From assembly GCA_026936335.1 (NCBI GenBank), contig JAPMXV010000057.1, positions 186,001 through 250,000 of the forward strand: a stretch of 64,000 bases of DNA, written 5' to 3'. Made by a program: the position numbers and the translations under genes. This document shows positions 3,456 to 23,976 of the stretch, one piece after another; position 1 is the stretch's first letter, and every line of letters begins with the position of its first letter. This DNA comes from Mantamonas sphyraenae STR306. Taxonomy: Eukaryota > Protista > CRuMs. The notes beneath the pieces were generated by a model. That model worked only from the letters and a program-made list of their open reading frames with translations. It ran no database searches and was not told where the DNA came from.

Positions 3456-5880
3456 ATGATGGGACGTACGGATGAGCAGGGGGCGTCGTCGACGTCGCAA
3501 AAGCGACATGGGGCCGGCGGTGTCAAGACCGACCGCGCGAGCCAGGCGTTCCAAGCACAACTGGAAGCGCGACGAGCAGAACGAGAGCGCAAGCGGGCAC
3601 AGATTGCGGAGCGGAAAGCAGAACGCAAGGCACAGGAAGAGTGGGAGGCGGAAGAAGCACGCAAGGTAGGTCTTTTTGCTCATTTCAACGGACATCCGCA
3701 AAGGCAGGCGGGAAAACGGCACCAGGCAGCTGACACGGGAGGAGCGGGACATGCACACACAGGCGGAGCAGCAAGCACGGATGGAAGAGCTGGAGAGGAA
3801 ACGGGCGTGGCTGGAGGAGGAGCGAGCACGGCTGAATGAGTCGTTGAACAGCAGTCGAGACGCAAGGAGTGTGTTGACGGAGGCGGAGAGACGGCAGCAG
3901 CGGAGCGCAGAGACGGACCCGCTGAGCCGGATACTGGAGGAGAGCGCAGGAATGGAAGTGAACGGGTCGTTACTGGACGACTTTTCGGGAGAAGATCCGA
4001 TGGAGTTTGTGGAAGGCGGGGGAGGAGGCAGTGGGGAAGTGGAGGAATTGGGAGCTGGGACGACAGAAGCCACAGAGACGCAGGGGAGGCATGGGACGGG
4101 CAAGGGCAATGGAGAGGCGTGGGAAACATCGTCGGTGGTGTCGAGGGGATCGAGTATGAGCCAGAGAAGCAGTGTACAGAAAAAGGGAGAGGCACGACGG
4201 GCTCGCGAGCGCGAGGCGAATCTGGAGGCTATTGCACGGCGGCAGGCACGGGAGGAGCGTGCACGTAAGATGCGGGAGGCTCTTGAAGAGACGGTGGCAG
4301 TTGGGCAAGGGACACCACCAAGCCAACATGAGCTGCGTGCACGGAAGCACAAGGAAAAAGTGAGTGGACGCAAGACGGCGCCGGGAGAGGTGGTGAACGG
4401 AGAGTACCAGTCGCCGTACAAGGTAAGGACACAGGGGAAAAGGCCGAAGAAGAGCCACTTTGAAGGATCTAGCAAGTCGAGTGGGGCTGGGGCGGACGAG
4501 AAGGAGGGAAGGGAACGAGTGGACCCGCGCAAGGCAGCACACAGTGCGAGTGCACGTAGTCTGAAGGGCACGACGGTGCATGGACGCAAGACGAAGCGGC
4601 TGGCATGGAGCGAAAAGGCACACAAGGAGGAGGAGGAAGAGGCGAGGGTGGCACGTAGGGTGAGCCAACACCACCGGACGGCGGACAGGAACCCACGCAG
4701 CAAACCATGGTCGGCAAGCAGCAAACACAAGGAGATTGTGGCCAACGCGCCGCTGAGCTACACTGCGGGGGCGCCGCCAATTCTGCATATGGATCGAGAG
4801 GATGTGACAGTGGTGGAGGAGGAGCCGAGGTCGCCAAAGCCACCTGTGCCACGGCTGGGAGTGCGTGGCGGGAGCACACAGAGGGAGGAGCCGGAAGAGG
4901 GGGTGCAACAGGTGCCGCTGAAGCCACCCGTGCCTGTGGTGAAGAACAAAAAGGTGCCGAGTGAGGAGGAGCCGATGAAGGCGAGCGATCTGCCGCGGAA
5001 GCCTGCAGTGCCGCGGTTTGACAATGTGGTGCGACGGCAAAACGCAGTGAGGGAGGAAGTGGAGCGAGAGAAAGAGCGCAAGGCGGAGGCAAAGAGGAAA
5101 CGGAAGCAGGAGGTGATGGCGGAACGGCGAGAGAGGAGGCGGCGTGCGCGCGTGGAGAAGGAGAGACATGCACAGCACAAGAGGGGGAGCAAGGGAAAGG
5201 TGAGGGTGCCACAGGGGGTTCCTTCACTCAAGTGGGACCCGCAGATGTTGACGAACGAGCTGGACGAGTCGTTCGAAGAGGCTGAACGGCAGGCGAGCGC
5301 ACGGAGCAGTGCGTTTGAGAGCGAAGAAGCGGAGCGGAGCTCGTTGATGGAAAGCATTTCCCCGCGCAAGAAGATGCAAGAGGAAGAAGAGGGGCAGGGA
5401 CAGGAGACAGAGGACGAGGAGGAGTGGGAGGAGGACGAGGAGGAATGGGAGGAGGACGAGGAAGAGGACGGGAGTGGAGGACGGGAGCTTGCGGAGAGGA
5501 GGAGCGAGAACAGTGAGGCGCTGTCGGACATGTTGTACATGGGCAGTCCGCGAAGTGGGAGCGAACGGGATGGAGGATGGTCGTCTGCGGGAGAGACTGA
5601 GTCAAGCGTCAGCACTTTGGGCATGGGGGGATTGACACCCAGGAGTGCGGCTGAGCGAAGGGCAACCCTGCTGGCACGAGCACAGGCACGCATTCAGGAG
5701 AGGATGGAAAAGAGGAGTGCCCTCATGGACGAGTGGAGTGGAAGCGAGAGCGAAGGGGACGTGGCTGTGGACGTGGAGTTTGATGTGAGGCGGGCCTTGA
5801 CACTACGGGAAAGGATCGAGGCGGCAGTGCGGGGAGATGTGGTGTCTGTGGGTGGATTGGAGGGCGACAAGGAGGTGTGA
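3456..5880 (+). CDS. Low-complexity, charged (E/R/K/S-rich) coiled-coil/disordered protein of unknown function
   Basis: ATG at 3456. Intron 3666-3762 (GTAGGT...gctgac...acacag) joins EEARK to AEQQARMEE in frame with the 734-aa ORF. Confidence 0.7.
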
Positions 5881-5947: not shown

Positions 5948-6581
5948 ATGAACAAGAGCTGGATTGCCCTGCTTCTGATTGCCCTTAGCGCCTTTGCCCT
6001 CGCCGAAGAGGCTGCCGCCACAACGGAGGAGACTGCCGCGGATGCGGAGGTCGCCGACCAGGTGGAGGACGATATTGCCGCTGAGACGGAGGAGGAGGAT
6101 GCTGCGGTGGACAGCGATGACGCCGAGGAGGACGCCGAGGCCGATGAGGAGGAGGAGGCCAACGAGAGCGAGGAGAGCGACGAGGCTAGCCTGTACGTCG
6201 TTGGCGCGAGCGAGAAGAAAGCGCAACCCGCTCCCACCATCCCCCCTTTTTTTCCGCATTCGGCCGTTTGTGCTTTTGCTTTTGTGGGTGATTTTGGAAG
6301 AGCTGACACGTGTGAATGGATGGGATGACCACAGTGACACCGAGGTGAGCGACGCCGACGCAGAAATCGAGGAGACCGAGGACGAGACCGATGCTCTGCC
6401 CGAGGTGAGCAGCGACGAGTCGAACGAGGAGGATTCCGCTCTGGAGCAGTCTGACGCCTCCGAGGAAGATTCTTCGGACGAGGAGGACAGCGACAACGAG
6501 GAGGGTATCTTCAGCAAGCGTGGTGGAAGCAGTGGATACCGCGGTGGCCGCATCGGTGTCAACCCTTGGGGCGGCTGGTAA
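5948..6581 (+). CDS. Small secreted prepropeptide, copy 1 (163 aa): signal peptide, D/E-rich spacer, cationic Gly/Trp C-terminal peptide
   Basis: MNKSWIALLLIALSAFALA signal. Phase-2 intron 6193-6334 (GTACGT...gctgac...accacag). C-terminus GIFSKRGGSSGYRGGRIGVNPWGGW*. Paralogous to 15931-16635. Confidence 0.85.
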
Positions 6582-6765
6582 ATTGCGACCACACGTGCCG
6601 GGCAGTCGCCTGGCAGCAATTTGGTGATGTCGGTGGCAAAACGAGTGAATGAAAGCACGCGTGTTGTCCGCCAGTAGGGGTAGTTGCTGGTGTGTGGCGT
6701 CGGAAAAGCAGAGACCTGGGCCAACGCGGCGCAGGCGCTTCCAACGATTTTTGTCATCATTCACG

Positions 6766-9700
6766 ATGCACGAGATCGACGTGGATGGGAGAGACGTGGA
6801 GGGCAAAGACACATGGAAGCTACGCGTGCCGTCATGGGTGACACGAGGGCGGAGAGTGGCGGGACAAGGACTGCTCCTGCTTCTTCAGTGGCAGCATCCA
6901 ACTCCAGACTGGATGGTTGCCGTGTCCCTCTTTCTTGTGCATAGTCAAGCAGTAGCACTGCTCGCACCAGCAGGTGAGTGTACTTGGGTGCATTCAACCC
7001 AACACCGCGCAGGCGGAAGGTTGACAGACCTTTTCGTCCAGTTGTTCTTCCTGCGCGTCGAAAGAACACTTTTCGTCCAGTTGTTCTTCCTGCGCGAAGG
7101 AAGAACAACTCGACAAAAGTTCTTTGAACACAGCAGCACTGAATTGTGGTGTGCCAGAAGGGGACTTGGTCGTGGAAGACATATAACTCCTTCGAGTGAA
7201 CGTGTGTTTCGGGAGAGGACTCGTGGTTGTGATGAGTTCGCAGCGGCGGGCCCTTTTCGTCAAAAATCTACGATGAAAAAGAGTTCGACCCCAGGCTCGC
7301 AGAAACACGAGTGCTGGCACGAAACATCGATTCCAGCGGATTGGAAATGACCCTTACAGCATGCGATGAACCCATACATTGGTCGATGAGCACGTACGGT
7401 GAGCTCGTCGGAGAATCTGCTGACACCAAAATCCTTCTTTGCGAACAGGCATCCTGAGCGGACATGAATCTCACAGCGGCGGATCTCCCGTCGAACAAGT
7501 GATGCGTGCGTTGTTGCTTCTGACAGTGGCCGAGCACTTGACGGCGTGGGTTCAGGCCTTGGTGCTGGTCGTGTTTGGGCTTCTGGCGTTCACGATTTTG
7601 GCCACTTCCAGACAGTTCTTTCTGCTCATCTTCCCCGTGCGTGTGTTGCGCCAATTGCTTCCCGTGGCATCTTCTGTGCTGTACACACCGATGGTGTGTG
7701 TCCTACTGGCGGATGGCAGCGGACTGAGCTGGCTTTGCACGGTGCTCTTGTTCTTCATTGGATTCGCGTGGAATCTACTTGGATTTGACTCGAATCCAAT
7801 GTCCACGTCGGCATTGGCACGTCCGCATGGACGAGGCACCGCCATGTGGTTTGTGATCCGCAGCGCCTTGGCCATCGGTGCAATGACGAAACTGGGGGGC
7901 GTTTTGGACGATGAAGAGCGCGCACGGCTGTTTTTCATGGGCTATGCGGTGTTGGAGAGTTCCTGCGTGCTGGTGCAGTGTGTGATGATGCCTTTCTTTG
8001 CGCAGTGGATGAACCAGCTCTCGATCGCGCTCACAGTAGCTGGGATGAGTGGGACGCTGGTGGCAGCCGTGATGTCATCGGAAGAAGCATTGACGTTCAA
8101 CGTGGTGTGGGTTGTGTGCACTGGAACGTGTGCCGGCGTGGCGTGGATTGGCGTTGGACAACTTTACGACCGCAAGTTTCGCATGCCCATGGCCGGCGTG
8201 TGCGATCAAGACACTCGTATGGATCAGTGGGTGTATGTGGATCCATTCAACAGTGTGCTTGTGGTGGGTGGAGAGCCGCTTGAGGTGCGCTCAGCATTCG
8301 AAGTGGAGGTGTTTGCACGCTTGTTGGAGAACGAAGAGGACATGATGGCCTTCTACAAGTGTGCCCTGGCCCTGTTTCGACACAGTGCCTACTTGTGGCT
8401 GTGCTACCACCGACTCCAGCTCGCCGTGAGAGACGGTAAGAGCTCAGTCGACTTGGACAGTCTGTACGACTTGTTCCCACGCACAGACATCTCTCTGATG
8501 ATCGCGCTGGAGCGCACACGTATGTTGGACCACTCCAAGGATCTGTCTGGCCTTGCATCCCATATGGAACTGCAGGCAAGCCTGGATTTGGCAGAGTCGA
8601 GGCACGTGATGACGCTGCAGTTGCTGGAACGCTTCTGGAGTCTGCAGCAATTTCAGGAGGTGGACATGAACGAACTGGAGGCGCTGGTGTCCACCATTGT
8701 TCTGTGCCAGCGCAGGACACGCGCAAAGTACCTGGCGATGATCGATCGATTTCCACGCAAGCCGCGAGTGTTTCGAGCGTACGCTCACTTCATGGAGGAG
8801 GTGATGGGCAACGAAAGCGTCGCATTTCAGCTGCATGCCAAAGCAAACCAGCTGGAGGTGATTGTGGAGGCTCGGCGGAGGTGGGAATCGGGATTGGGAC
8901 ACAGCAGGTCATCGCTTGTGGTGAACCGAGCGTGTTCGATTGTTGCGGTGGACACTGAGTGTGTGCTGGATTGGAACTGCGCAGATCTTGTGCACAAACC
9001 CATCAGCAAGCTGTTTCTGGGCGACGGGATGTCCACGTCACACTTCAAAGAGAAGCATGTGTGGGCTGCTGTGTCGACTGAAGGCGAGCTCGTGCTGATC
9101 GAGGCTGTTGGTGAGGCGATGGAGCACGGTTTGACGTCAGTGGTCATCCGAAACGACCCGATGAAGTACGCGGGCCAGCTGCTGCTCGGATTCGAGGTGC
9201 GAGGAGTCAGCGTACCCACGTTGTGCCTGGTGGCGTGGAACAACTTGGCAGCTGTGTGGTGCAAAGAAGCAAATGTGCGCATCCAGACCTTGCGAGGCGT
9301 CCATGTGGACTCTGTGGTGGAGCCTGTGAAAGGTGGCAAGCGTGCGAGCGAACTGATGGACACAGCAGCGAAGGAAGAAGATGGACGGGCATGGGGCAAG
9401 TTCACTTTGCCTTTGCTTGCGTGCGGAGAGGTCAAGTGCCAGCTGATGTGGAATGAGCACCAGAAGGTGCTGTGTGTCGCCGTTGCTTCCGCACAGGTGT
9501 CCCATGCTCAGGCCGTTGTTCGACAACAGCGACGCAGGGTGTCCCACAGGGCACCTTGGGGTCGATCAACTCACACAGTGACACCGCCGACGTCGTCGAT
9601 GCTCACATCTCGTCGTGCATCCGTCGCCCCAGAAAGAAATCGACACGCAGCCGCAACAAGAGAAAGTGTGTGTGCCCAAGCATGCTTTGCTCTCGAGTGG

Positions 9701-12700
9701 TGGGAGCACATTGCAATCTGTCGACGAGGAGTCCGACACCCGCGCGCGTCACGAGGCAATTCTCGCCCGCGTTCGTGACTTGCGTGCACGGGTGGCACGG
9801 AATGGGTTGACATCGAGCAGCCTTGATGCTCGCCACAACGATGCGGTGCAGAGTTTGAAGCGTGTGGTGATGGCTTGCGTACTTCTAGCGCTGTCGCTGG
9901 TGGCACTGAATGCGGCCCAACGCATTTGGGTGCATCCCAATGGCACGTCCGCAATGACCCTACACGAAGTTCTCCATCACACTGGACGGGCAGTAGGCAA
10001 GAGTGAGCTTTACGCACGCATCCTTCAGGCGGACGGCGAGCGCGTAATGCTGCAGCGGAGTGCATCCACGAGCAATCAGTCGACGCATGGAAACTCGACC
10101 CGGAGACAGGCGTGGCTGGAGCATGTGCTTCAACTTGATGGTGTTCGGGACTATGGATCTCGCTTGCGGGTCTCGGGTCATCATTTGGCCGAAGCGAAGC
10201 AGAACATGCACGTCCTCCCGCCAGGATCGAGCAGGGCATCGGGTAGAATCATGTCCAACTCCTCTGTGCGTGTGTTCAGACGCAGCAAAAGCGGCGTCAA
10301 GGGGGGTTCAGACATGACTCTGTCTCCCATGGCGGCTACCTCGATAATGGCGCATTCCGTGTTGGCAGGAGCGGATGCAAACGTGTCTGCCATCAATTTG
10401 ACAACAGGGGCCTGGGATCGGCTCATGCACGGTTTTCACTTTGTGGTGGACAATGGCAAGGCTCTGCGTGGGGTGCTGGAGACCCAGTGCCTCGATGTGG
10501 TTCTCGAGTTTGTGGATGTTGTGCAACGGTTGGGGCTCGAGACGTCGTTGCGTGCGGCCAACGCCACAATTGTGCTGTTTTGCGCACTTGCGCTGGTGAT
10601 GCGCAAAAACGTGCATGCAACGTCATTGGAGAGGCGAAGGGCGACGATTGCGATTTCAAAGCTGGCCAAACCGGTCTTTCGGAGGCTTGCCACCCAGTAC
10701 GAGGCTTATGTTGCACGACACTCAGGTGCAGTGATGCCTGGAGTGGAATCGCCCTTGGATGTGATAGGGAGCGCACAGGCAAGCCCTCAATACGGCACGG
10801 AGGCTGGTACGCAAGGAGAGTCGACGCCGTCGATTTTGGACATGGAAGCGAGCGAAAGTGAGGATCTGAGGACACAACTGCGTTCAAAGGACAGGCGACT
10901 GTTGTTGGGCTTCGGGGTGACGTTCCTTGCACTGGGCATGGTGCTGGGACTGAGCCTGGCAACCCAGGAGCAGTTCTTGGCGAGAAACGAAGGACTGCGG
11001 GTGGCATGGGGCCTGCACAATGCGATCAATGATGCAAAGCCAATGGTGGTGGACTTTGTGCTCGCCGGATCCGTGTCGAATGCGACGGCGATGCGGGCGG
11101 CAGCCGGAAACGTGCGCAGATGGGTGGATTCCATGAATCGGGTGATGGCAGCGAATGGCACGGAACAGGACTTTGAGACGCTTCAATTGGTTTACACGCT
11201 GGATTTGTGCACGAAACACGCGTGCAAGACGGCGTGGGGGAGGCACCACGCTTTCCGGGGTGTGCTGGCGCTGGTGACGTCGTTTGCCAGAGAATTGGAA
11301 GATTGGGCGTCGCAAGGGACGATGGAGGGGAGTCGCGAAGTGGTTGCGAAACAGGTGTTGATTGAGCAGGAGGGGGTTTTGGTGTTTGCGGTGGAGAGGC
11401 TGGTGGACATGCTGATGGCTCGGATGGAGAGATTGATGAGTCTGTGGATTCCCTCGACTGTGATTGTGGATGGACTGGGAGTGATCTGCATTGTGTGTGT
11501 GTTTGGGGTGGTGTTGTGGCCAACAACACGGGATCTGGACGATGAGGCACAGCACATGCAATTTGTGCTGCTGACGATGCCGGACGAGGTGCTGGTGCAG
11601 GTGCCTCAGATTGGAGAGCTGCTGTATCTGTTCGATGATGATGAAGATGACAGCAATGTGAGGTCTGCCTCAGGGCAGTTGCGACAGCACCGGATCCGTC
11701 GCGTTTCCGAAGCAAGCGAAGACACGAACGGTGCATGGGCGGGGATTTTGCGGATGGCCAGGGGTCACAAGGTTGCATTAGCAACAGGTATCGCGGTGTT
11801 GTGGACGGCTGGGTGGTTGGTAGGCATGCTTGTGAACGAAAACGAGTCCGCTGACGGATTGGGCATCGTGCAAGCGGTGGTGGGCTGTGGCATCAGTGCG
11901 GTGCTGATACCGACGCAAGTGTCGACTACGATGATGATAGCTGGGCCTTGGGTCGTGGGGGCAGGAGGGTGGTCCATGTTGGAGGCGGTGACTGTGCTCG
12001 TGCCTGTGCAGGCCGTGTGTGCGAGCATGACGGCCTTGTGGCTGGTTTGGGGATTGCAGAAGGATGTCGAGTGGAAGTATGTTCGCTCAGTGGGTGTGGG
12101 GGTCCTTGTGGGAATGGGTGCGATGGTGCTGATGGGATTTGGGATCGGGGAGCAGGGGATGATGGGGTGGATGTTTCGCCGGATGGGCAACTGCTTTGGC
12201 CTGACCATCATGATCTGGTGGAATTCCCGTGAGGGCAGCCAAGACGACGGATTGGTTGGACCACGAACGCACGCGCTTGCACCGTACCTTGGGATTGTTG
12301 TGGCTGGGTTGACGCTGGTGGATTGGCAAGTGGGCGGGGTAGGGCACATCCTCGTCGCGGCGTCGATGACGCTGCTTCAAGGCAGGAAGATGAGGGAAGC
12401 TCTTCCGACCACAATGTGTGTCCTTGCACTTTCGAGCTGGATCCAAACCGCAGGCATGGCTGCAGGAGGACTGTACGCAAACATACGCGGGGAAATCGCT
12501 GCCGTTGGAGGTTGGTTGATGGTTTCATCCGTGTTGCTGAGCGTGTCGAGTCTGTGGGCGTTCAATCATTGGGAGCTGTGTCTGCGCTTGTTTGTTTTGT
12601 GGGCGTACTCCGGCTACGCTTTGGGGTATGCGCGTTCAAGAGCGGCGACGGAGGCAATCTCACTGGTGTTTGAGGTTTGCATTGGCCTCGGGCTGGGCTA

Positions 12701-12842
12701 CACCCTGAAAGCAGGGCGTTCTGCAAATGACCAGGTGGAACGCGCGACAAGGAATGTGGTGGGGCCAGCAGAACCGCAGAGCGATGGCGAGAGTCTGCTC
12801 CTGCTTGTCTCGGCAAGATTGAAAGAAGAGGACGTGAAGTGA
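6766..12842 (+). CDS. Large multi-pass membrane protein, TmcB/TmcC (tiny macrocysts)-like with degenerate PAS region and a C-terminal TauE/SafE-like hydrophobic domain
   Basis: Predicted exons 6766-6973, possibly 7360-7398, 7449-9496 and 9633-12842. N-terminal TM bundle. TmcB-like segment FPRKPRVFRAYAHFMEEVMGNE. PAS-like segment VVNRACSIVAVD...LVHKPISKLF. LLTMPDEVLVQVPQI motif. The intron joining the two long ORFs (9497-9632) has a weak donor. Confidence 0.6.
7030..7119. repeat. Intronic 39-bp-period tandem duplication plus imperfect inverted repeat (hairpin)
   Basis: cttttcgtccagttgttcttcctgcgcg occurs at 7030-7057 and 7069-7096. gaagaacaactcgacaaaag (7100-7119) is a near reverse complement of the repeat's first 21 nt. 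Confidence 0.85.
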
Positions 12843-12882
12843 TTGTGGAAATGAATCGGAGATGTTCATTCGTTGGATGTGA

Positions 12883-15823
12883 TCACCAGCGACCTCCACC
12901 GCGGCGACCTCCACCGCGGCGACCTCCACCACGTCGGCCACCCCAGGAACGACGGGAACGGCGCGAGCGACGAGCACGAGCAGCACGGGCACGAGCAGCA
13001 CGGGCACGAGCAGCGCGAGCACGAGCAGCGCGAGCACGGGCAGCACGAGCAGCAGCAGCGCGCGCACGGGCAGCACGAGCACGAGCGGCGCGAGCACGAG
13101 CAGCAGCAGCAGCGCGAGCACGAGCATGGGCGGCAGCACGAGCACGAGCAGCACGGGCACGAGCGGCAGCAGCAGCACGAGCACGAGCAGCGGCACGAGC
13201 ACGAGCAGCGGCGGCAGCACGAGCGCGAGCAGCACGGGCACGGGCGGCAGCAGCAGCACGAGCACGAGCAGCAGCACGAGCACGAGCACGAGCAGCAGCC
13301 TGGGCACGAGCGCGAGCAGCAGCACGAGCACGAGCAGCACGGGCACGGGCGGCAGCGGCAGCACGAGCGCGGGCAGCAGCACGAGCACGAGCACGAGCAG
13401 CAGCCTGGGCACGAGCACGAGCCTGAGCACGAGCACGGGCAGCGGCACGAGCGCGAGCTTGAGCACGAGCACGGGCCTGAGCGCGAGCACGAGCCTGAGC
13501 ACGAGCACGAGCAGCCTTACGAGCGCGGGCCTGAGCACGAGCACGGGCACGAGCAGCAGCCTGAGCGCGAGCACGTGCCTGAGCACGAGCACGGGCAGCC
13601 TTACGTGCGCGAGACGCAGCCTGGGCACGAGCACGAGCAGCCTTGGCACGTGCACGAGCAGCCTTGCGAGCACGCGATGCAGCCTTTGCGCGAGCACGTG
13701 CGGCCCGGGCGGCACGAGCGCGGGCCTGAGCCCTTGCGCGAGCAGCTTTGGCACGTGCACGTGTGGCACGGGCAGCCTTGGCACGAGCACGAGCGTTGGC
13801 ACGTGCCGCACGGGCCTTGGCGCGCGCTGCAGCACGGCCGCGCAGACCTGCCTTGCGAGCGTTGGCACGAGCCTTGGCCGCAGCGCGTGCAGCCAGGCCG
13901 CGGGCCTTGCGTGCTGCGCGCTCCTTGGCGCCACGCAGCGCAGCAGCGGTGGCACGGCGAGCACGGCGTGCCAAAGCACCAAACGACTTGGGACGCGATG
14001 TCTTGCCGTTCGTCTTCTTGCCCGAGAAGCGGTTGGAGATGCGGGACACCAGCCCCTCAACTGCCGATCGGTACGTGGACTTGATCTTGTCGTCCACCAG
14101 CCCCTTGACGTAGTTGCGTGCAAACGTGGCCGGCCCAAGCCCAGCCAACTTCTCCTTGGCCGCCTTCACAGCCTTGTTCACCAACGCACGTCCGGCCTTG
14201 GTGGACGTCAGGCGGCCCACAATGCTGCGTGCAGCCTTGCTGCGCAGCATGTTGTTGACAGCCTTGCTTGCGGCGAGACTCTCAAGACGCGTCAGCGCCT
14301 TGCCCTTGCGCACCGCCGTGGTGAGGGTCTTTTGGAGACCCGCAAGGCGCGGGTTGTTGGCAATGGCCGTCATCAGGCGCTGCTGGGAAGCAGTGAGTGC
14401 CCCCTTGCCCTTGGTGGCCAGGGAACGCAGAGGTCCGAAACGAGTGGCGAGATTGCCTGCAAACTTGCCAGCTCCCAGAGCCAGCTTGCCTGCCTTGGCC
14501 ACCGGCACCAGACCCAAGACTCCGCTTACAGCTGCTGCCTGCAGTTTCTGCTTCTGCGTGCCATCGGTAGCCAAGTAAGAGCCGAGGGCGCCGCCTGCAG
14601 CTGCGCCCACGGGCACACAGCCCGGTCCGCACGCCGCAAACCCAGCTGCGCCGCCTGCCACCATGCCAATTGTCTCGGCGTTGTCTTTGGCAAACTTCTT
14701 GCCCTTGGTGTATGCCACCTGGGCACCGTTGCCAATGGCAACACCGGCCGTGTGCAGCGCAGCTCCAGCCTCGCGAGCCACCGTCTTTGCTCCGTTGCCC
14801 ACTGCGCTCACAATCTCACCCGTCGTCATGGCTTTGATTTCGCCGTTGCGAACACGCTCACGGTTGCGGCGACGGATCGCAGCACCGCGCTCGTCCTGCA
14901 CCTCGCTGTCGCTGTCGCTGTCGCTGCTGCTGCTGTTGTTGGGGTCAACGGCACGAGTTTGCACAGGGTAACTCTTGCAAACGGCACGCACACTGAGCAT
15001 GGCATGCTGGAAGCGACGCATCTGCTTGCGGAGACGCCAGCGACGCTTCATCATGGCCGCGCTGGAGCGCAGACCCTTGGTGCCCACGCGTCCACTGGCC
15101 ACACGCGACGCGTAGTGACGCTGGTAGCGTTGGTAGCGCTGGATGCGCTGCATGGTGCGCGTCATCAGCTCACGTGCGTTGCTCAGCGACTTGGCAAAGT
15201 CTTCCGACGGCAGCTCTCGTCCACGCACGGCCTCCAGCAGTCGACGCTGCTGCAGCAGGTCTCGTCGCAGGTGCGAGAACGCACGGTCCGACTTGCTCAT
15301 GTCACGCGCAAACACGGCGTAGACAGGCTGTGCGATGCGGGGCTGCACGCTGTGGGGGGGAGGGGGGAGAGAAAAAAAAGGGGAGGGCGCGGAGGTTCGT
15401 TCGTTGGTGAGTTTTCGGAGGGAGGGATGGCGTTCTTTTTTGAACCCCCCTTTCTTTTGCCAACACTCACAAGCGACGGCGACGCAACCAACGTCGGAAC
15501 TGCCTACGCTCCTGATCGTCGGCGTCCATGTCTTCGATGTCGATGTTTGTCTCGGAATCGTCGTCCTCGTCCGAGTCTGCATCGGCGTCGTCCACGGCGT
15601 CGTACTCGCCGTCATTGTCCGACTCTGAGGAGGAAACGTCGTCGGCATCGTTTGCACGCTGCGTCTCCTCTTCAGGCAGGCCTTCGTCTGCCTCGCTGGA
15701 CATGGCCGACTCCACCGCCGACTCCGAGTCCGAAGACGACGACGCAGACGCATCGGACATGCACACGCACGCGCCAACCATCAAAAAGAGAAGGAAAAGA
15801 GCAAACTGTCTGTGGGCCGACAT
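12883..15823 (-). CDS. Secreted 939-aa protein: signal peptide, acidic pro-region, cationic helical region, glycine-zipper, long Ala-Arg repeat, GRRGG/Trp tail
   Basis: ATG at 15823 (MSAHRQFALFLLFLMVGACVC). Intron 15470-15350 (GTGAGT...ccccacag, phase 2) joins ...RRWLRRRRF to VQPRIAQ in the 964-aa ORF frame. Confidence 0.8.
12890..13970 (-). repeat. Coding low-complexity tandem repeat (GCT-CGT/GCT-GCT units) encoding poly(Ala-Arg), plus a 15-bp repeat encoding GRRGG
   Basis: Plus strand shows degenerate gcacga/gcagca hexamers for ~1 kb, and gcgacctccacc x3 at ~12889-12930. Confidence 0.9.
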
Positions 15824-15930
15824 GGTCCGCTCGAAAAGAACTTGAATCGAGAAAAAAGGGTGTGGCGCAGCCGGCGCTCCGCTCGCTCGCGCCTTGCACC
15901 CAACCAAAAAACGACAAACACCTGCTAGCA
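15824..15930. promoter_or_regulatory. Putative bidirectional promoter between two secreted-protein genes
   Basis: Only 107 bp separate the divergent ATGs at 15823 (-) and 15931 (+). Confidence 0.5.
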
Positions 15931-16635
15931 ATGAGCAAGAGCCTGATTGCCCTGCTGTTGATTGCCCTGTGCGCCTTTGCCATGGCCGAAGAAACCGCCC
16001 AGGAGGCACCCGTCGCCGAGACGGCCGCGGAAGCGGACGACGCGGACCTGGAGAAGGAGATTTCCCTCTCCGCCGGCGAGGAAGAGATCCTGGCTGAGGA
16101 CGACGATGTCGAGAGCGATGCCGCCGACGAATCGGATGTGTCGGACGAGACTGAGGATTCCGAGGACAGCGAGGAATCTGCCCTGGACAGCGACAGCGCT
16201 GTGGAGGACGAGTACGTTTGCGGCCATCCATTTTTTCATCCGCCAATTCATCCGGGCCCGTTTCAACGCCCCTAGACACACATACACACGTGGTCGACAG
16301 ACATCCACGTGCTCACACACATGAACCCACCCTCCCCCCGCCCCCCGTCTTTTCCACACAGGTCCAGCGTGGACAGCGACGTCGAGAAGGACGCCCTGCC
16401 GCAGGGCTCGGAGGAGGAAGCGGAGGATGAGTCGACTGAGGACGACGACAACGAGAACGACGAGGACGAATCGTCCGAGGAGGACTCTTCGGACGACGAG
16501 GAGGACAGCGACAGCTTCATCCCGCGCCACATCACCATCCCGGGCTTCAAGACCCCCAAGAGGGGTGTGACGCTCAAGAAGGGCGGCACGAAGAAGCAGC
16601 CCGTTGCTGGCATCAACGGATGGTGGAACTGGTAA
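15931..16635 (+). CDS. Small secreted prepropeptide, copy 2 (184 aa): signal peptide, D/E-rich spacer, cationic Trp-ending peptide
   Basis: MSKSLIALLLIALCAFAMA signal. Phase-2 intron 16212-16361 (GTACGT...ccacacag). C-terminus FIPRHITIPGFKTPKRGVTLKKGGTKKQPVAGINGWWNW*. Confidence 0.85.
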
Positions 16636-16678: not shown

Positions 16679-17371
16679 CTACGTCGTCGTTGTGTCCTCA
16701 CTGTCGTCTTGGGCGTCCATCTCGAAACGTGGAGGCCTGTCCTCTTCGGGCAGCACCAGGCGCAGCTCGTCCAAGCCTTGCATGATGCGTGCCACGTGAG
16801 CGTTGACCTGGCGCAGTTGTTCGTTGATGCGAGCCAGGTTATTGTCCGCCTGCTTGCCAAAGCCCTTGAGGTCGCTCACTTTGAACGCCGTCCTGTACAG
16901 CACGTTGTTCCCTGCCACCTCCAGCGCACCCATGCTCGTGCGCAGGATCCCCTGCCGCCTGCATACCTCCTTCGAACACACCCTCAGGTAATTCTTGTAT
17001 CGGCCCATGATGCCCACCATGTGTTCGCCCGTAACCACGTCCAAGTTCTCCTCCGCTGGCGCTCCCAGCAACTTGCTCCACGAAAACTGCGTCTCCGTCG
17101 ACGACTTGATCAATGGCTCCATCGGAGCCAGCTCCCTCAGCCGCGCCACGTCCGGTTCCACCTGTTCCTTGCGCCCTTCTAGCCTCTTCTTCTCTGTGAA
17201 GCTTGTCACGGTGATGATTTTCCCTTCCCGTTCCTCCGCCTCGTTTTCCGTGCCCACTTCCTTTGAGTACGACGCGTACGGGATCTCCTCACCCGCGTCT
17301 GCGTTTGTCTCCACCTTGCGTTTGCCCTTGCTCTGTTCGCCACCCGTTCCACTCGACTGTTCGTTGCCCAT
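16679..17371 (-). CDS. BORCS5: BLOC-1-related complex subunit 5 (myrlysin/LOH12CR1)
   Basis: Myristoylation-type start MGNEQSS. RYKNYLRVCSKEVCRRQ and C-terminal LDELRLVLPEEDRPPRF match the BORCS5 pattern. Confidence 0.8.
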   Translation of the reverse strand: MGNEQSSGTGGEQSKGKRKVETNADAGEEIPYASYSKEVGTENEAEEREGKIITVTSFTEKKRLEGRKEQVEPDVARLRELAPMEPLIKSSTETQFSWSKLLGAPAEENLDVVTGEHMVGIMGRYKNYLRVCSKEVCRRQGILRTSMGALEVAGNNVLYRTAFKVSDLKGFGKQADNNLARINEQLRQVNAHVARIMQGLDELRLVLPEEDRPPRFEMDAQDDSEDTTTT

Positions 17372-17545
17372 GTGGTGTTTCGAATTCCCCTGCCTCTGCA
17401 TGGGCACCATGCACAGCACCCACGTCCCCCCCCACCCCCCCCGCGAGCACCCTGTGTGCCCGTGCTCGTGCGCATGCACCAGCAGACCGTTGTGTGGGTT
17501 GTTCAATCCAGTGCAATCACGTGTGCTTCATTGTCGCAATCTTGC

Positions 17546-21276: not shown

Positions 21277-23976
21277 TCAAACACGGCGGCGCTTGCCCTG
21301 AGCCTTGGAACGAGCCTGAGCCTGAGTCTGAGCCTTGGCCTGGGTCTGTGCCTGGGGCTTGCCCTGGATCTTCGCCAGCAGAGCATGGCTGCGCTGGAGA
21401 AGAGCCTCGCGACGCTTGAGCATGGTCGCGTGCATCTTGCGCTGCGCGCGTGCCAGACGACGGTCCTGCTGGTTGAGGGCAGCCAGGTTCTTGGTGCGAT
21501 CGTTCAACGTCACGTTGACCTTGCGCACGTGCACCTGGTAGCTCGTCAGCTTGCGCTTCAGACGCTGCATCGCAGCCACCATGGCAGCGACAGCCTGCTT
21601 ACGCTTGCGCTCCTGCGCGGCTGTTGCCTTCTTGATGCCCTTCACGACGCTCGTGGTCTTGGCGTGCTTCTTCTGGACCTTGTTGGCCAGCTTGGTGCGG
21701 AAGCGGTTGATGCGCTTGTCCAGCTGGCTCACCTTGCGGCGGATCGTCACACACAGCTCACCTGTCGTCTTGCCAAACTTTTGGCAAGCGCGCAGAAACA
21801 CGCGGTGGTGCTTCTTTACGTTTTCCAGGCGGTTGCGGCGCGCGCGGTATGTGGCCAGCGCCCGGTTGTACCACGCCACCCACTGGTTCAGGGCTGCGTG
21901 CAGGCGGTTCGTCACACGGCGGAACGCCACCGAGCGGTTGTCGATCTGCGAGCGCGTGCGCAGCATGCGTGCGTGCAGCAGGCGCATGACCTTGACAAAG
22001 CGCTTCAGGGAACGGCGCGTCTTGGTCTGGTCGGCTGTGTTCTGGCGAACACGCTTCTGGATACGCTGGTGCAGCGTCGCAAGCTTGGTCTGCAGCTTGG
22101 CTGCGTCCTTGCGCGTCTGCTTGTGCAGGTTGCGGATGCCCTTTACAATGCGGCGACGCACATCGCTGGTCTGCATGTCCGAAACATCCTGGCTGCAGTC
22201 CGAGCAGTGACCCAGCTCGTGGGCCATCTCGTTGCGCAGCGTGTCGTACTCGATCGCTGTGTTGTAGTCCGACAGTCGCTGCTCTGCGTGTGCCTCGTCC
22301 AGCGATTCTTCCTCGCTGTTCGACGCCTGCAGCGACGCCTTCAGGTCGCGCACCTCGTCGGCCATGCCGCTCTCGCCTGCGCTTCCCTCCACGTCCTCGT
22401 AATCCGACGACGAGGCGCTCTCGGGCGCATACTCTGCCGTCTCCGAGTCCATGTCCTCGTCCTCGTCCACCAGATCGGCTGCCTCGCTGGGCAGCTCGGG
22501 CTGGCGGTCGGTGTTGCGCAGCAAGCCCATGTCGGCCTTTTGCGGTTCCTCCGTCAGCCACACGCCACTGTGCTTGGCACTGGCCGTCGCTCCGGCGCCG
22601 CCGCTGCTACTGCTGCTGCTGCTGCCGGCCGGCTTCTTCGTGACATGATGGTGGGACACGATACCCTGGTCCTGGTCCTGGTCCTCGTCGGCCACCAGGT
22701 CATCGTCGTCGGCGTCGTCCATAAGCGATGCCTCGTCGACCTTGGTGCCCTCGTCGGCCTCGTCCGCGAGGTCTGCGTCTTCCTCCGAGCTGCGCACCAC
22801 CTCCTCGTCCTCCACGTCCAGGTCCTCGTCGTTGTCGGCAATGTCCAGTTCCGCGGGTTCGTCAAGCGCAACCTCTGCGGTGCTGGCAACCTTGTTTGCC
22901 GTCGTTGTTGTTGTTTGCGTCTCGCTCAATGCGTCCGCTGTGTTCTCGGTCTTGCTGCTGCTCGCACGCTTGCTGGATGCTTCCAGCTCCTGTGCCGCTT
23001 GCTCCTCCTCCTCGCTGCTGTCCTTCAGGTTGTCAGCTGCGTCGAGGCTGCTGACCACGCTGGGTTCCGTGCTGCTCGAGTCCACCACAGCTGCCTCGGT
23101 GCTAGGCACCAGGCTGCTGCCGGCTTCATCGGCAGACGAGTCTTCGTACTCGCCTGCAGGAGTGGTCTGTTGCGAAACACTTTGTGTCACAGGCGCGTCG
23201 TCGCTGCTGTCCACCACCGTGGGCACTTCCGACGACGACACCGCCTGCTGCACGCTGCTCGGCTTCACAACCACATTCGTCAACTGTGCCATGTGCGCCG
23301 TCCCACATCCATGCCATGTGTGTCAGTTTTGACGCTGTGCATCCAGCCTCTTTGTCTCCCTCGTGCTCCAGCCTCCCGCGAAAGGACATCCGCAATCGCA
23401 CAATTCGCTGCTTGCGACGTTTGCCCTGGACAAACCCTCCTCAGCACTGCCGCACTGCACATCGACACGTCGCATACGCCTGCCCTGCGTCTACACGCAT
23501 TCACCACTCTGTGAAGCTGGCTCTGCGACGTCTCTCTGCGCTGTGTCTGGCTGTGGGGCGCCAGGGCGGTGCGCACGCGCCCGTTTTTTTCCCTCCCCAT
23601 CCAGCCCCGAATCTACCCGTCCGGCGTCTGCCTCCCACAGCCCACACATGGGCTACTGCACGACTGCACTGTGCGCACACATGCACCGACAATCTGCTGC
23701 ATGTGTGCGCACTGTGCGCCTGCATGCCCTGGGCGTGTCCCGCAGCGACGCAAGACGGGCATTCGTCGGAGAGAACCGGAAAAAGCTTCGAGCGGCCGCT
23801 TCCTCTTTCTCCCCACTCCCTTGCGTCCCTCCTTGTTCTCATGTGACACAACTTACCGAAGGGCTGTGTGCGTTTGCAGCGGACACAAAGGTGTTTGAGA
23901 CCAGCAACAACACAACAAAGAACACAGACACACGAGCGGACTGAACGGAGCGCATTGTGGTTTGCAACGTGCTCAT
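21277..23976 (-). CDS. Secreted ~708-aa protein: signal peptide, S/T/D/E-rich N-terminal half, K/R-rich helical C-terminal half
   Basis: Exon 23976-23857 (…VSVFFVVLLLVSNTFVSAANA; alternative ATG at 23955). Phase-0 intron 23856-23284 (GTAAGT...actgac...gcacag). Exon 23283-21277. Confidence 0.75.

Follow-up and report, generated by a model that had tools for sequence, protein, structure and literature searches.

Two paralogous acidic secreted-protein genes with a shared Gly/Trp C-terminus in Mantamonas sphyraenae, candidate peptide precursors within a five-gene signal-peptide cassette family

Granins and proteins that pack cargo in the manner of serglycin are acidic, disordered secretory-granule proteins with dibasic sites, which condense cationic cargo and may yield bioactive end peptides. 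In the dermaseptin superfamily of frogs, genes that differ in their payloads have a conserved leader in common, and KR is the usual processing signal (PMC3742671). The antimicrobial peptide (AMP) genes of the arminin/periculin type in Hydra encode bipartite precursors, with a negative N-terminal and a positive C-terminal part (PMC10945409). Here we describe two genes, A and B, that invite comparison with all of these. They lie in a 64,000-nucleotide stretch of Mantamonas sphyraenae STR306 DNA (contig JAPMXV010000057.1, here C57:186001-250000), hereafter the window; positions are those of the window unless a contig or locus is named. Mantamonas is a voracious, gliding marine bacterivore that belongs to the CRuMs supergroup (PMC10492846). 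Genome-wide counts refer to the whole 25.06-Mb M. sphyraenae assembly of 78 contigs. We know of no secreted effector or antimicrobial peptide described so far in CRuMs, a deep-branching supergroup.

An earlier note on this DNA had described two plus-strand genes, each encoding a signal peptide, an acidic region and a cationic tail that ends G[VI]NxWxxW immediately before the stop. Both genes were re-derived from the raw sequence and confirmed, with the following features:

5948-6192, + strand: gene A exon 1, with the ATG at 5948; its translation gives a signal peptide and then an Ala/Glu/Asp-rich acidic region, net charge -31
5948-6004, + strand: gene A signal peptide, 19 residues, cleavage motif ALA-EE (cut after ALA)
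6193-6334, + strand: gene A intron, 142 nucleotides, GTACGT...CTGAC...CAG, phase 2, read directly
6335-6581 (TAA included), + strand: gene A exon 2, with an acidic region containing a DALP motif, then SEEDSSDEEDSD, then a 25-residue Gly/Trp tail
6459-6494, + strand: gene A conserved acidic block SEEDSSDEEDSD, just before the tail
6504-6578, + strand: gene A cationic tail module, 25 residues, 4 K/R, no D/E, one KR
15931-16211, + strand: gene B exon 1, with the ATG at 15931; signal peptide, then acidic region, net charge -32
15931-15987, + strand: gene B signal peptide, cleavage motif AMA-EE (cut after AMA)
16212-16361, + strand: gene B intron, 150 nucleotides, GTACGT...polypyrimidine...CAG, phase 2
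16362-16635 (TAA included), + strand: gene B exon 2, with an acidic region containing DALP, then SEEDSSDDEEDSD, a basic insertion and the tail module
16474-16512, + strand: gene B conserved acidic block SEEDSSDDEEDSD, just before the tail
16516-16563, + strand: gene B 16-residue basic insertion, ending KR
16564-16632, + strand: gene B 23-residue tail module; the whole tail (16516-16632) has 39 residues, 8 K/R, no D/E and one KR

The phase-2 GTACGT introns reported for both genes are indeed there: each runs GTACGT...CAG and interrupts a codon between its second and third bases. Of the possible CAG/AG acceptors in gene A, only that at 6332-6334 restores the frame of exon 2. The hexamer GTACGT occurs 38 times in the window on both strands, where shuffles lead one to expect 9.6. 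This enrichment of about fourfold is consistent with a favoured donor site and suggests that GTACGT is a strongly preferred 5′ splice-site hexamer in this genome.

In layout, A and B match dermaseptin prepropeptides, which likewise consist of a signal peptide, an acidic propiece and, as their C-terminal end, one cationic peptide (PMC3742671). Gene B also shares with them a KR directly before the module. The dermaseptin propiece, however, is 24-26 residues long and ends in KR, whereas the acidic region of A and B has 120-135 residues (about five times as many), of which some 60 are Asp or Glu, and a KR at its boundary is not conserved. The dermaseptin signal peptide ends in Cys and those of A and B in ALA or AMA; dermaseptins form amphipathic helices and are often amidated, while the tails of A and B are Gly/Trp-rich, non-amphipathic and end in Trp. 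No Pfam or other sequence match connects the prepro region of A and B to the dermaseptin superfamily. The AMP genes of Hydra are likewise secreted, bipartite (anionic/cationic) and taxonomically restricted orphans, with clustered paralogues that arose by tandem duplication (PMC10945409). No homology links the arminin/periculin-type genes to A and B either; the cationic part of arminin has about 30 residues, is much more highly charged and is demonstrably bactericidal, whereas in A and B the anionic part prevails by about 10:1. With granins, A and B share predicted secretion, acidity, disorder and dibasic sites, an analogy only, with no homology or Pfam match. To our knowledge, no granule biology has been described for Mantamonas.

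Several lines of evidence indicate that A and B descend from one coding gene. Their signal peptides are nearly identical, as had been noticed, with 17 of residues 1-21 matching and an AxA cleavage motif in both, and the first exons share 53% amino acid identity. In frame-blind DNA alignments of the exons, all seven indels (6, 3, 27, 6, 18, 45 and 6 nucleotides) are multiples of three, while no alignment could be obtained for upstream regions, introns or 3′ flanks; this combination argues for coding constraint on both genes. The synonymous divergence (dS) between them is approximately 0.9-1.2, so the duplication is old and both copies have stayed intact for a long time. Despite a dS near 1, both keep the start codon, the signal peptide, the splice phase, open frames and the terminal motif with its stop. 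The proportion of nonsynonymous differences (pN) climbs from the signal peptide (0.12) through the acidic region (0.33) to the tail (0.55), with p ≈ 0.003 for each step; this is the gradient by region that had been claimed, measured on the single sequence pair A/B, in alignments that consist of low-complexity sequence. For the acidic region, pN lies below its synonymous counterpart, pS (0.33 against 0.53, p = 0.006); in the tail, the two are similar (0.55 vs. 0.61). The lower dS of the signal peptide (0.37 vs. ~0.9) is a trend only (p = 0.14). Judged by these signs, A and B are real, functional coding paralogues of ancient duplication.

Relatives of the two proteins were sought exon by exon. 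Each exon, used both as a single sequence and in a profile against the whole genome, returned A and B and no further paralogue; the weaker matches (L003-L018, L023, L026 and L030) were set aside as unrelated acidic low-complexity open reading frames (ORFs). None of the exons had a Pfam match better than noise, word-index protein searches with the exon-containing open frames as queries, which brought full-length products within the length limits, were blank, and a HMMER profile scan of 1.84 billion protein representatives produced 0 matches. JGI metagenome scans were also blank, and the ESM Atlas offered only an unnamed cluster with a score of 0.75 and nothing usable. The proposal of a new protist family agrees with these searches, in which A and B have no detectable relatives in protein collections, metagenomes or Pfam. 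The products of A and B themselves were likewise not returned from the collections searched, which means that this genome's version is not included there, and orthologues from other Mantamonas may be missing for the same reason.

The signal peptide, on the other hand, is found in other genes. With a profile built from exon 1 of A and B alone, the best non-self match in the genome is a third signal peptide (E = 0.037), that of gene C, which lies on contig C57 about 90 kb downstream of gene B. When the signal-peptide core is written as a degenerate DNA pattern and at most one mismatch is tolerated, the 25 Mb contain exactly five sites; four of these genes had served to write the pattern, leaving only the fifth match (308555) as independent, and the profile match is the unbiased evidence. 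All five genes are on C57, between 191.9 and 308.5 kb, a span of 117 kb. Their consensus, M-x-[KR]-S...L[LV]L[IL]AL[SC][AV]FA[LMI]A, occurs nowhere else in the genome, and over the first 57 nucleotides A and B have 68-72% identity with C. Other secreted proteins in the window have signal peptides quite unlike this cassette. The matches outside the window are three genes, given first by the contig positions of their ATGs and then by locus:

C57:292110, 294564 and 308555 (ATGs), - strand: sister polyprotein genes C, D and E, cassette match
L031:6356-8111, - strand: sister polyprotein gene sharing the signal-peptide cassette of A and B
L031:8387-9979 with L032:~35-565, - strand: sister polyprotein gene sharing the cassette
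L033, ATG at C57:308555, - strand: sister polyprotein gene sharing the cassette

On this sequence evidence, A and B are a small branch of a five-gene, single-locus family that is defined by its signal-peptide cassette. The five-gene family on C57 is newly recognised here and, as far as the cassette tells, extends the observation made on A and B. Like A and B, the sister genes encode an acidic segment immediately behind the signal peptide, within which the single intron lies, and acidic spacers that lead into basic residues and a cationic, Gly-rich segment. The sister gene that was studied in detail (L031) has three 139-residue units, each made of a 106-residue Gly-rich cationic module (net charge +11) and a 33-residue acidic spacer that ends in RR and has a net charge of -9, so that each +11 module comes with a -9 spacer. 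The best helical hydrophobic moment of the cationic module is 0.77. Repeated 139-residue units and such strong helical amphipathicity are not features of A and B, and the sister units resemble antimicrobial precursors far more closely than do A and B. In a second sister gene, a run of seven Arg replaces the RR in some units. The idea of an AMP- or toxin-type gene family gains from the cassette, which stands at the head of three antimicrobial-looking genes in the manner of a conserved leader with a variable payload, but the Trp-tail family itself has only two members.

The tails have the composition that had been reported (see the features above). Over its full length, tail A can be aligned with the final 23 residues of tail B, with a local score of 40 against 22.4 ± 4.6 for shuffles (matched by 22 of 5000), and the alignment without its last nine residues is still above most shuffles (80 of 5000 reach its score). 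The common scaffold reads G[IV]xxK[KR]GG[ST]...G[VI]NxWxxW, with invariant anchors at G, K, GG, G-N-W and the terminal W, and the shared module has a charge of +4 in both genes. The extra length of tail B is its 16-residue basic insertion, which ends in KR and precedes the scaffold. Since the KR of B sits in this insertion and that of A inside the scaffold, the two sites are not homologous: the KR of A lies opposite a KK of B, and the KR of B, directly before the conserved module, lies opposite an EE of A. The only dibasic site conserved in position is the K[KR] just before GG[ST], where a cut would leave peptides of 19 and 17 residues. Back-translated together with the stop, the C-terminal motif occurs at exactly two places in the 25-Mb genome (reversed control, 0 and 1). 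The suggested pattern search for G[VI]N.W..W$ in this genome accordingly recovers A and B and no further members, even when the motif is relaxed. The proteins end in WGGW and WWNW, fitting WxxW. C-mannosylation of this terminal motif was considered and dropped, as the genome has no match to Dpy19 (PF10034) in an exon-by-exon search, which could miss one.

We tentatively favour the reading that A and B are secreted precursors from which an active C-terminal Gly/Trp peptide is released, and regard it as possible rather than probable. Their products would enter the secretory pathway by means of the 19-residue signal peptide and be exported as an intrinsically disordered, strongly polyanionic protein ending in a cationic Gly/Trp module of 23-25 residues. 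They could serve as precursors in a secretory or digestive (prey-handling) route, where the acidic region would mask the C-terminal module and maintain it in solution, or have it packed into vesicles. Cutting by a kexin-like convertase would then take place at dibasic sites, namely the K[KR] inside the module of both proteins and the KR just before the module of B, and would free a peptide of 17-23 residues. With its terminal Trp pair and few positive charges, this peptide might take up an interfacial position on anionic (bacterial) membranes or cell surfaces. The genome encodes a kexin/furin-type convertase (locus L024, ORF 94-2391, + strand, contig C45:~304314-306611), with Peptidase_S8 (E = 3.9e-44) and P_proprotein (E = 2.1e-28) domains, and a second P-domain locus (L025) is present. 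The L024 convertase carries a C-terminal SH3 domain, a combination that we do not know from other convertases. By analogy, processing of a precursor is partly supported by the leader shared with antimicrobial-like genes, the module conserved to its last residue, the dibasic sites, the convertase, the bacterivorous habit and the Hydra-like design.

The inference of an antimicrobial or pheromone-like family in the earlier note fares unevenly: architecture, divergence gradient, orphan status, cassette and convertase speak for it, whereas charge balance, amphipathicity and the homology of the KR sites do not. A number of observations weigh against a released, active tail. The acidic part, at about -60, exceeds the tail (+4 in A, +8 in B) by roughly 10:1, unlike charge-balanced propieces. 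Apart from the signal peptide, the best-conserved stretch is acidic; it is SEEDSSD(D)EEDSD, the block found just before both tails, as had been noted, and its conservation raises the possibility that the acidic part has a function of its own. The tails do differ, having the highest pN of the three regions, but they are not hypervariable and remain alignable on the conserved scaffold. No dibasic site at the boundary between acidic region and tail is conserved between A and B. The tails are Gly/Pro-rich and non-amphipathic, with whole-tail helical hydrophobic moments of 0.37 (A), 0.13 (B) and 0.05 (core module of B) and best 18-residue values of 0.58 (A) and 0.36 (B), compared with 0.77 in the sister genes. 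AlphaFold2 predicts exon 2 to be disordered (mean pLDDT, 59.5) with no secondary structure, and the peptides left after the proposed cleavage would have only about +2 to +4. Some antimicrobial peptides are nonetheless Gly/Trp-rich and non-helical, so the tails may still belong to that class. As for the sister genes, the intron of C, D and E falls at codon 39/40 and is in phase 0, that of A and B falls at codon 82/94 and is in phase 2, and BLASTP of exon 2 of A or B against the gene C polyprotein gives E values of at least 10. Homology of the payloads was dropped for lack of significant similarity, and to judge from these comparisons it is only the signal peptide that links A and B to the sister genes. 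A shared cassette with different payloads and introns points to a leader cassette placed before unrelated payloads, an arrangement familiar from the frog dermaseptin superfamily (PMC3742671). Taken as a design analogy, the earlier interpretation of A and B is partly supported, and the function is unproven.

A neighbour of gene B bears on the alternatives:

12883-15823, - strand: gene encoding a signal peptide, an acidic block and ~330 residues of poly(Ala-Arg), with the ATG at 15823; no Pfam family

Its large ORF has 187 Arg and a net charge of +211. Its ATG is 107 bp from that of gene B in a divergent, head-to-head arrangement, which suggests that the two genes may share a promoter. A probable GTGAGT intron follows directly after its first exon.

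If the acidic region is the working part, A and B could be polyanionic packaging partners, secreted counter-ions that condense, neutralise or chaperone the organism's many hyper-cationic secreted proteins in vesicles, a role that we consider somewhat unlikely. Packing would be of the complex-coacervate or the serglycin/granin type, with the poly(Ala-Arg) neighbour and the cationic polyproteins among the conceivable partners and the short Trp tail as no more than a docking, sorting or self-association motif. The net charges of about -56 (A) and -51 (B), next to a mere 4-8 basic residues in the tails, fit such a role, as do the divergent pairing of gene B with a +211 product at 107 bp, the purifying selection on the acidic region and its near-invariant SEEDSSD(D)EEDSD block. 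The signal peptide held in common with the cationic polyprotein genes could mean co-targeting. Yet the polycations of this genome already have acidic blocks of their own in cis, gene A has no adjoining cationic partner, and a pure counter-ion has no need of a C-terminal module that is kept to the very last residue. An altogether different view, that A and B are no functional genes but ORFs that arose by chance, or duplicates in decay, within acidic low-complexity DNA, could appeal to the absence of the spliced proteins, self-hits included, from the protein collections searched. We consider it extremely improbable, as at a dS near 1 the two retain start codon, signal peptide, splice sites of the same phase, frames and an identical C-terminal motif with its stop, every indel is in-frame, and pN is below pS in the acidic region.

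The terminal module conserved in both proteins might instead be recognised by a receptor. As signalling or pheromone-like precursors, A and B would yield Gly/Trp peptides of 17-23 residues that act on a Mantamonas receptor as a mating, density or aggregation cue. Low charge, low amphipathicity and a strictly conserved C-terminal motif suit receptor recognition better than membrane lysis. The existence of a diverged pair of paralogues is also in keeping with the idea, as are the dibasic sites and the encoded convertase. The idea is nevertheless very improbable in our view: no receptor candidate adjoins A or B, the polyproteins that share the cassette look antimicrobial rather than hormonal, and a polyanionic pro-region of 130 residues is atypical of pheromone precursors. 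We give just as little credit to the suggestion that the two are acidic Ca2+-binding, matrix or surface-coat proteins, forming a hydrated coat for gliding or adhesion that the Trp tail anchors to the organism's own membrane. Their disordered Asp/Glu/Ser-rich sequence, with 9-10 S-x-[DE] motifs per protein in both A and B, is compatible with that role, and Mantamonas does glide on surfaces (PMC10492846). Against it, no Pfam match to a Ca2+-binding or matrix family was found and no feature is specific to calcium. A Fam20C-type secretory kinase was not detected in the genome, and the related reading of A and B as secreted acidic phosphoproteins was rejected.

Release of an active peptide would mean that a unicellular bacterivore and animals had independently arrived at one design, in which a diversifying cationic peptide follows a conserved leader and an anionic pro-region, and it would make new Gly/Trp-capped peptide scaffolds available. 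It is tempting to go further and see in the C57 locus the first host-defence or prey-attack peptide family of CRuMs, in which one leader cassette serves unrelated payloads, as in the families of frogs and cone snails. A and B would then represent a new class of Gly-rich cationic peptides of 17-25 residues with a C-terminal WxxW cap, delivered from an oversized polyanionic carrier that might co-condense polycationic secreted proteins. This is speculation, and we rate it as improbable. Should the acidic part be what works, the locus would illustrate polyanion/polycation packaging of protist secretions, a model for the handling of highly charged cargo. Its present value is that of a well-defined and testable small set of orphan genes, not of a demonstrated mechanism.

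The surroundings of A and B contain further ORFs. A "bipolar" ORF of ~670 residues (21277-23976, - strand) is acidic in its N-terminal half, basic and coiled-looking in its C-terminal half, and belongs to no Pfam family; a candidate signal peptide for it lies on an upstream exon near 23839-23976. Spacing around A and B is very tight. Upstream of gene A, a 734-residue Glu/Arg/Lys-rich ORF (3676-5880, + strand) stops 67 bp ahead of the ATG. On the far side of gene B, a LOH1CR12-like ORF (16679-17506, - strand; Pfam E = 1.6e-4, just under the cut-off) is convergent with it, and the two stops are 43 bp apart.

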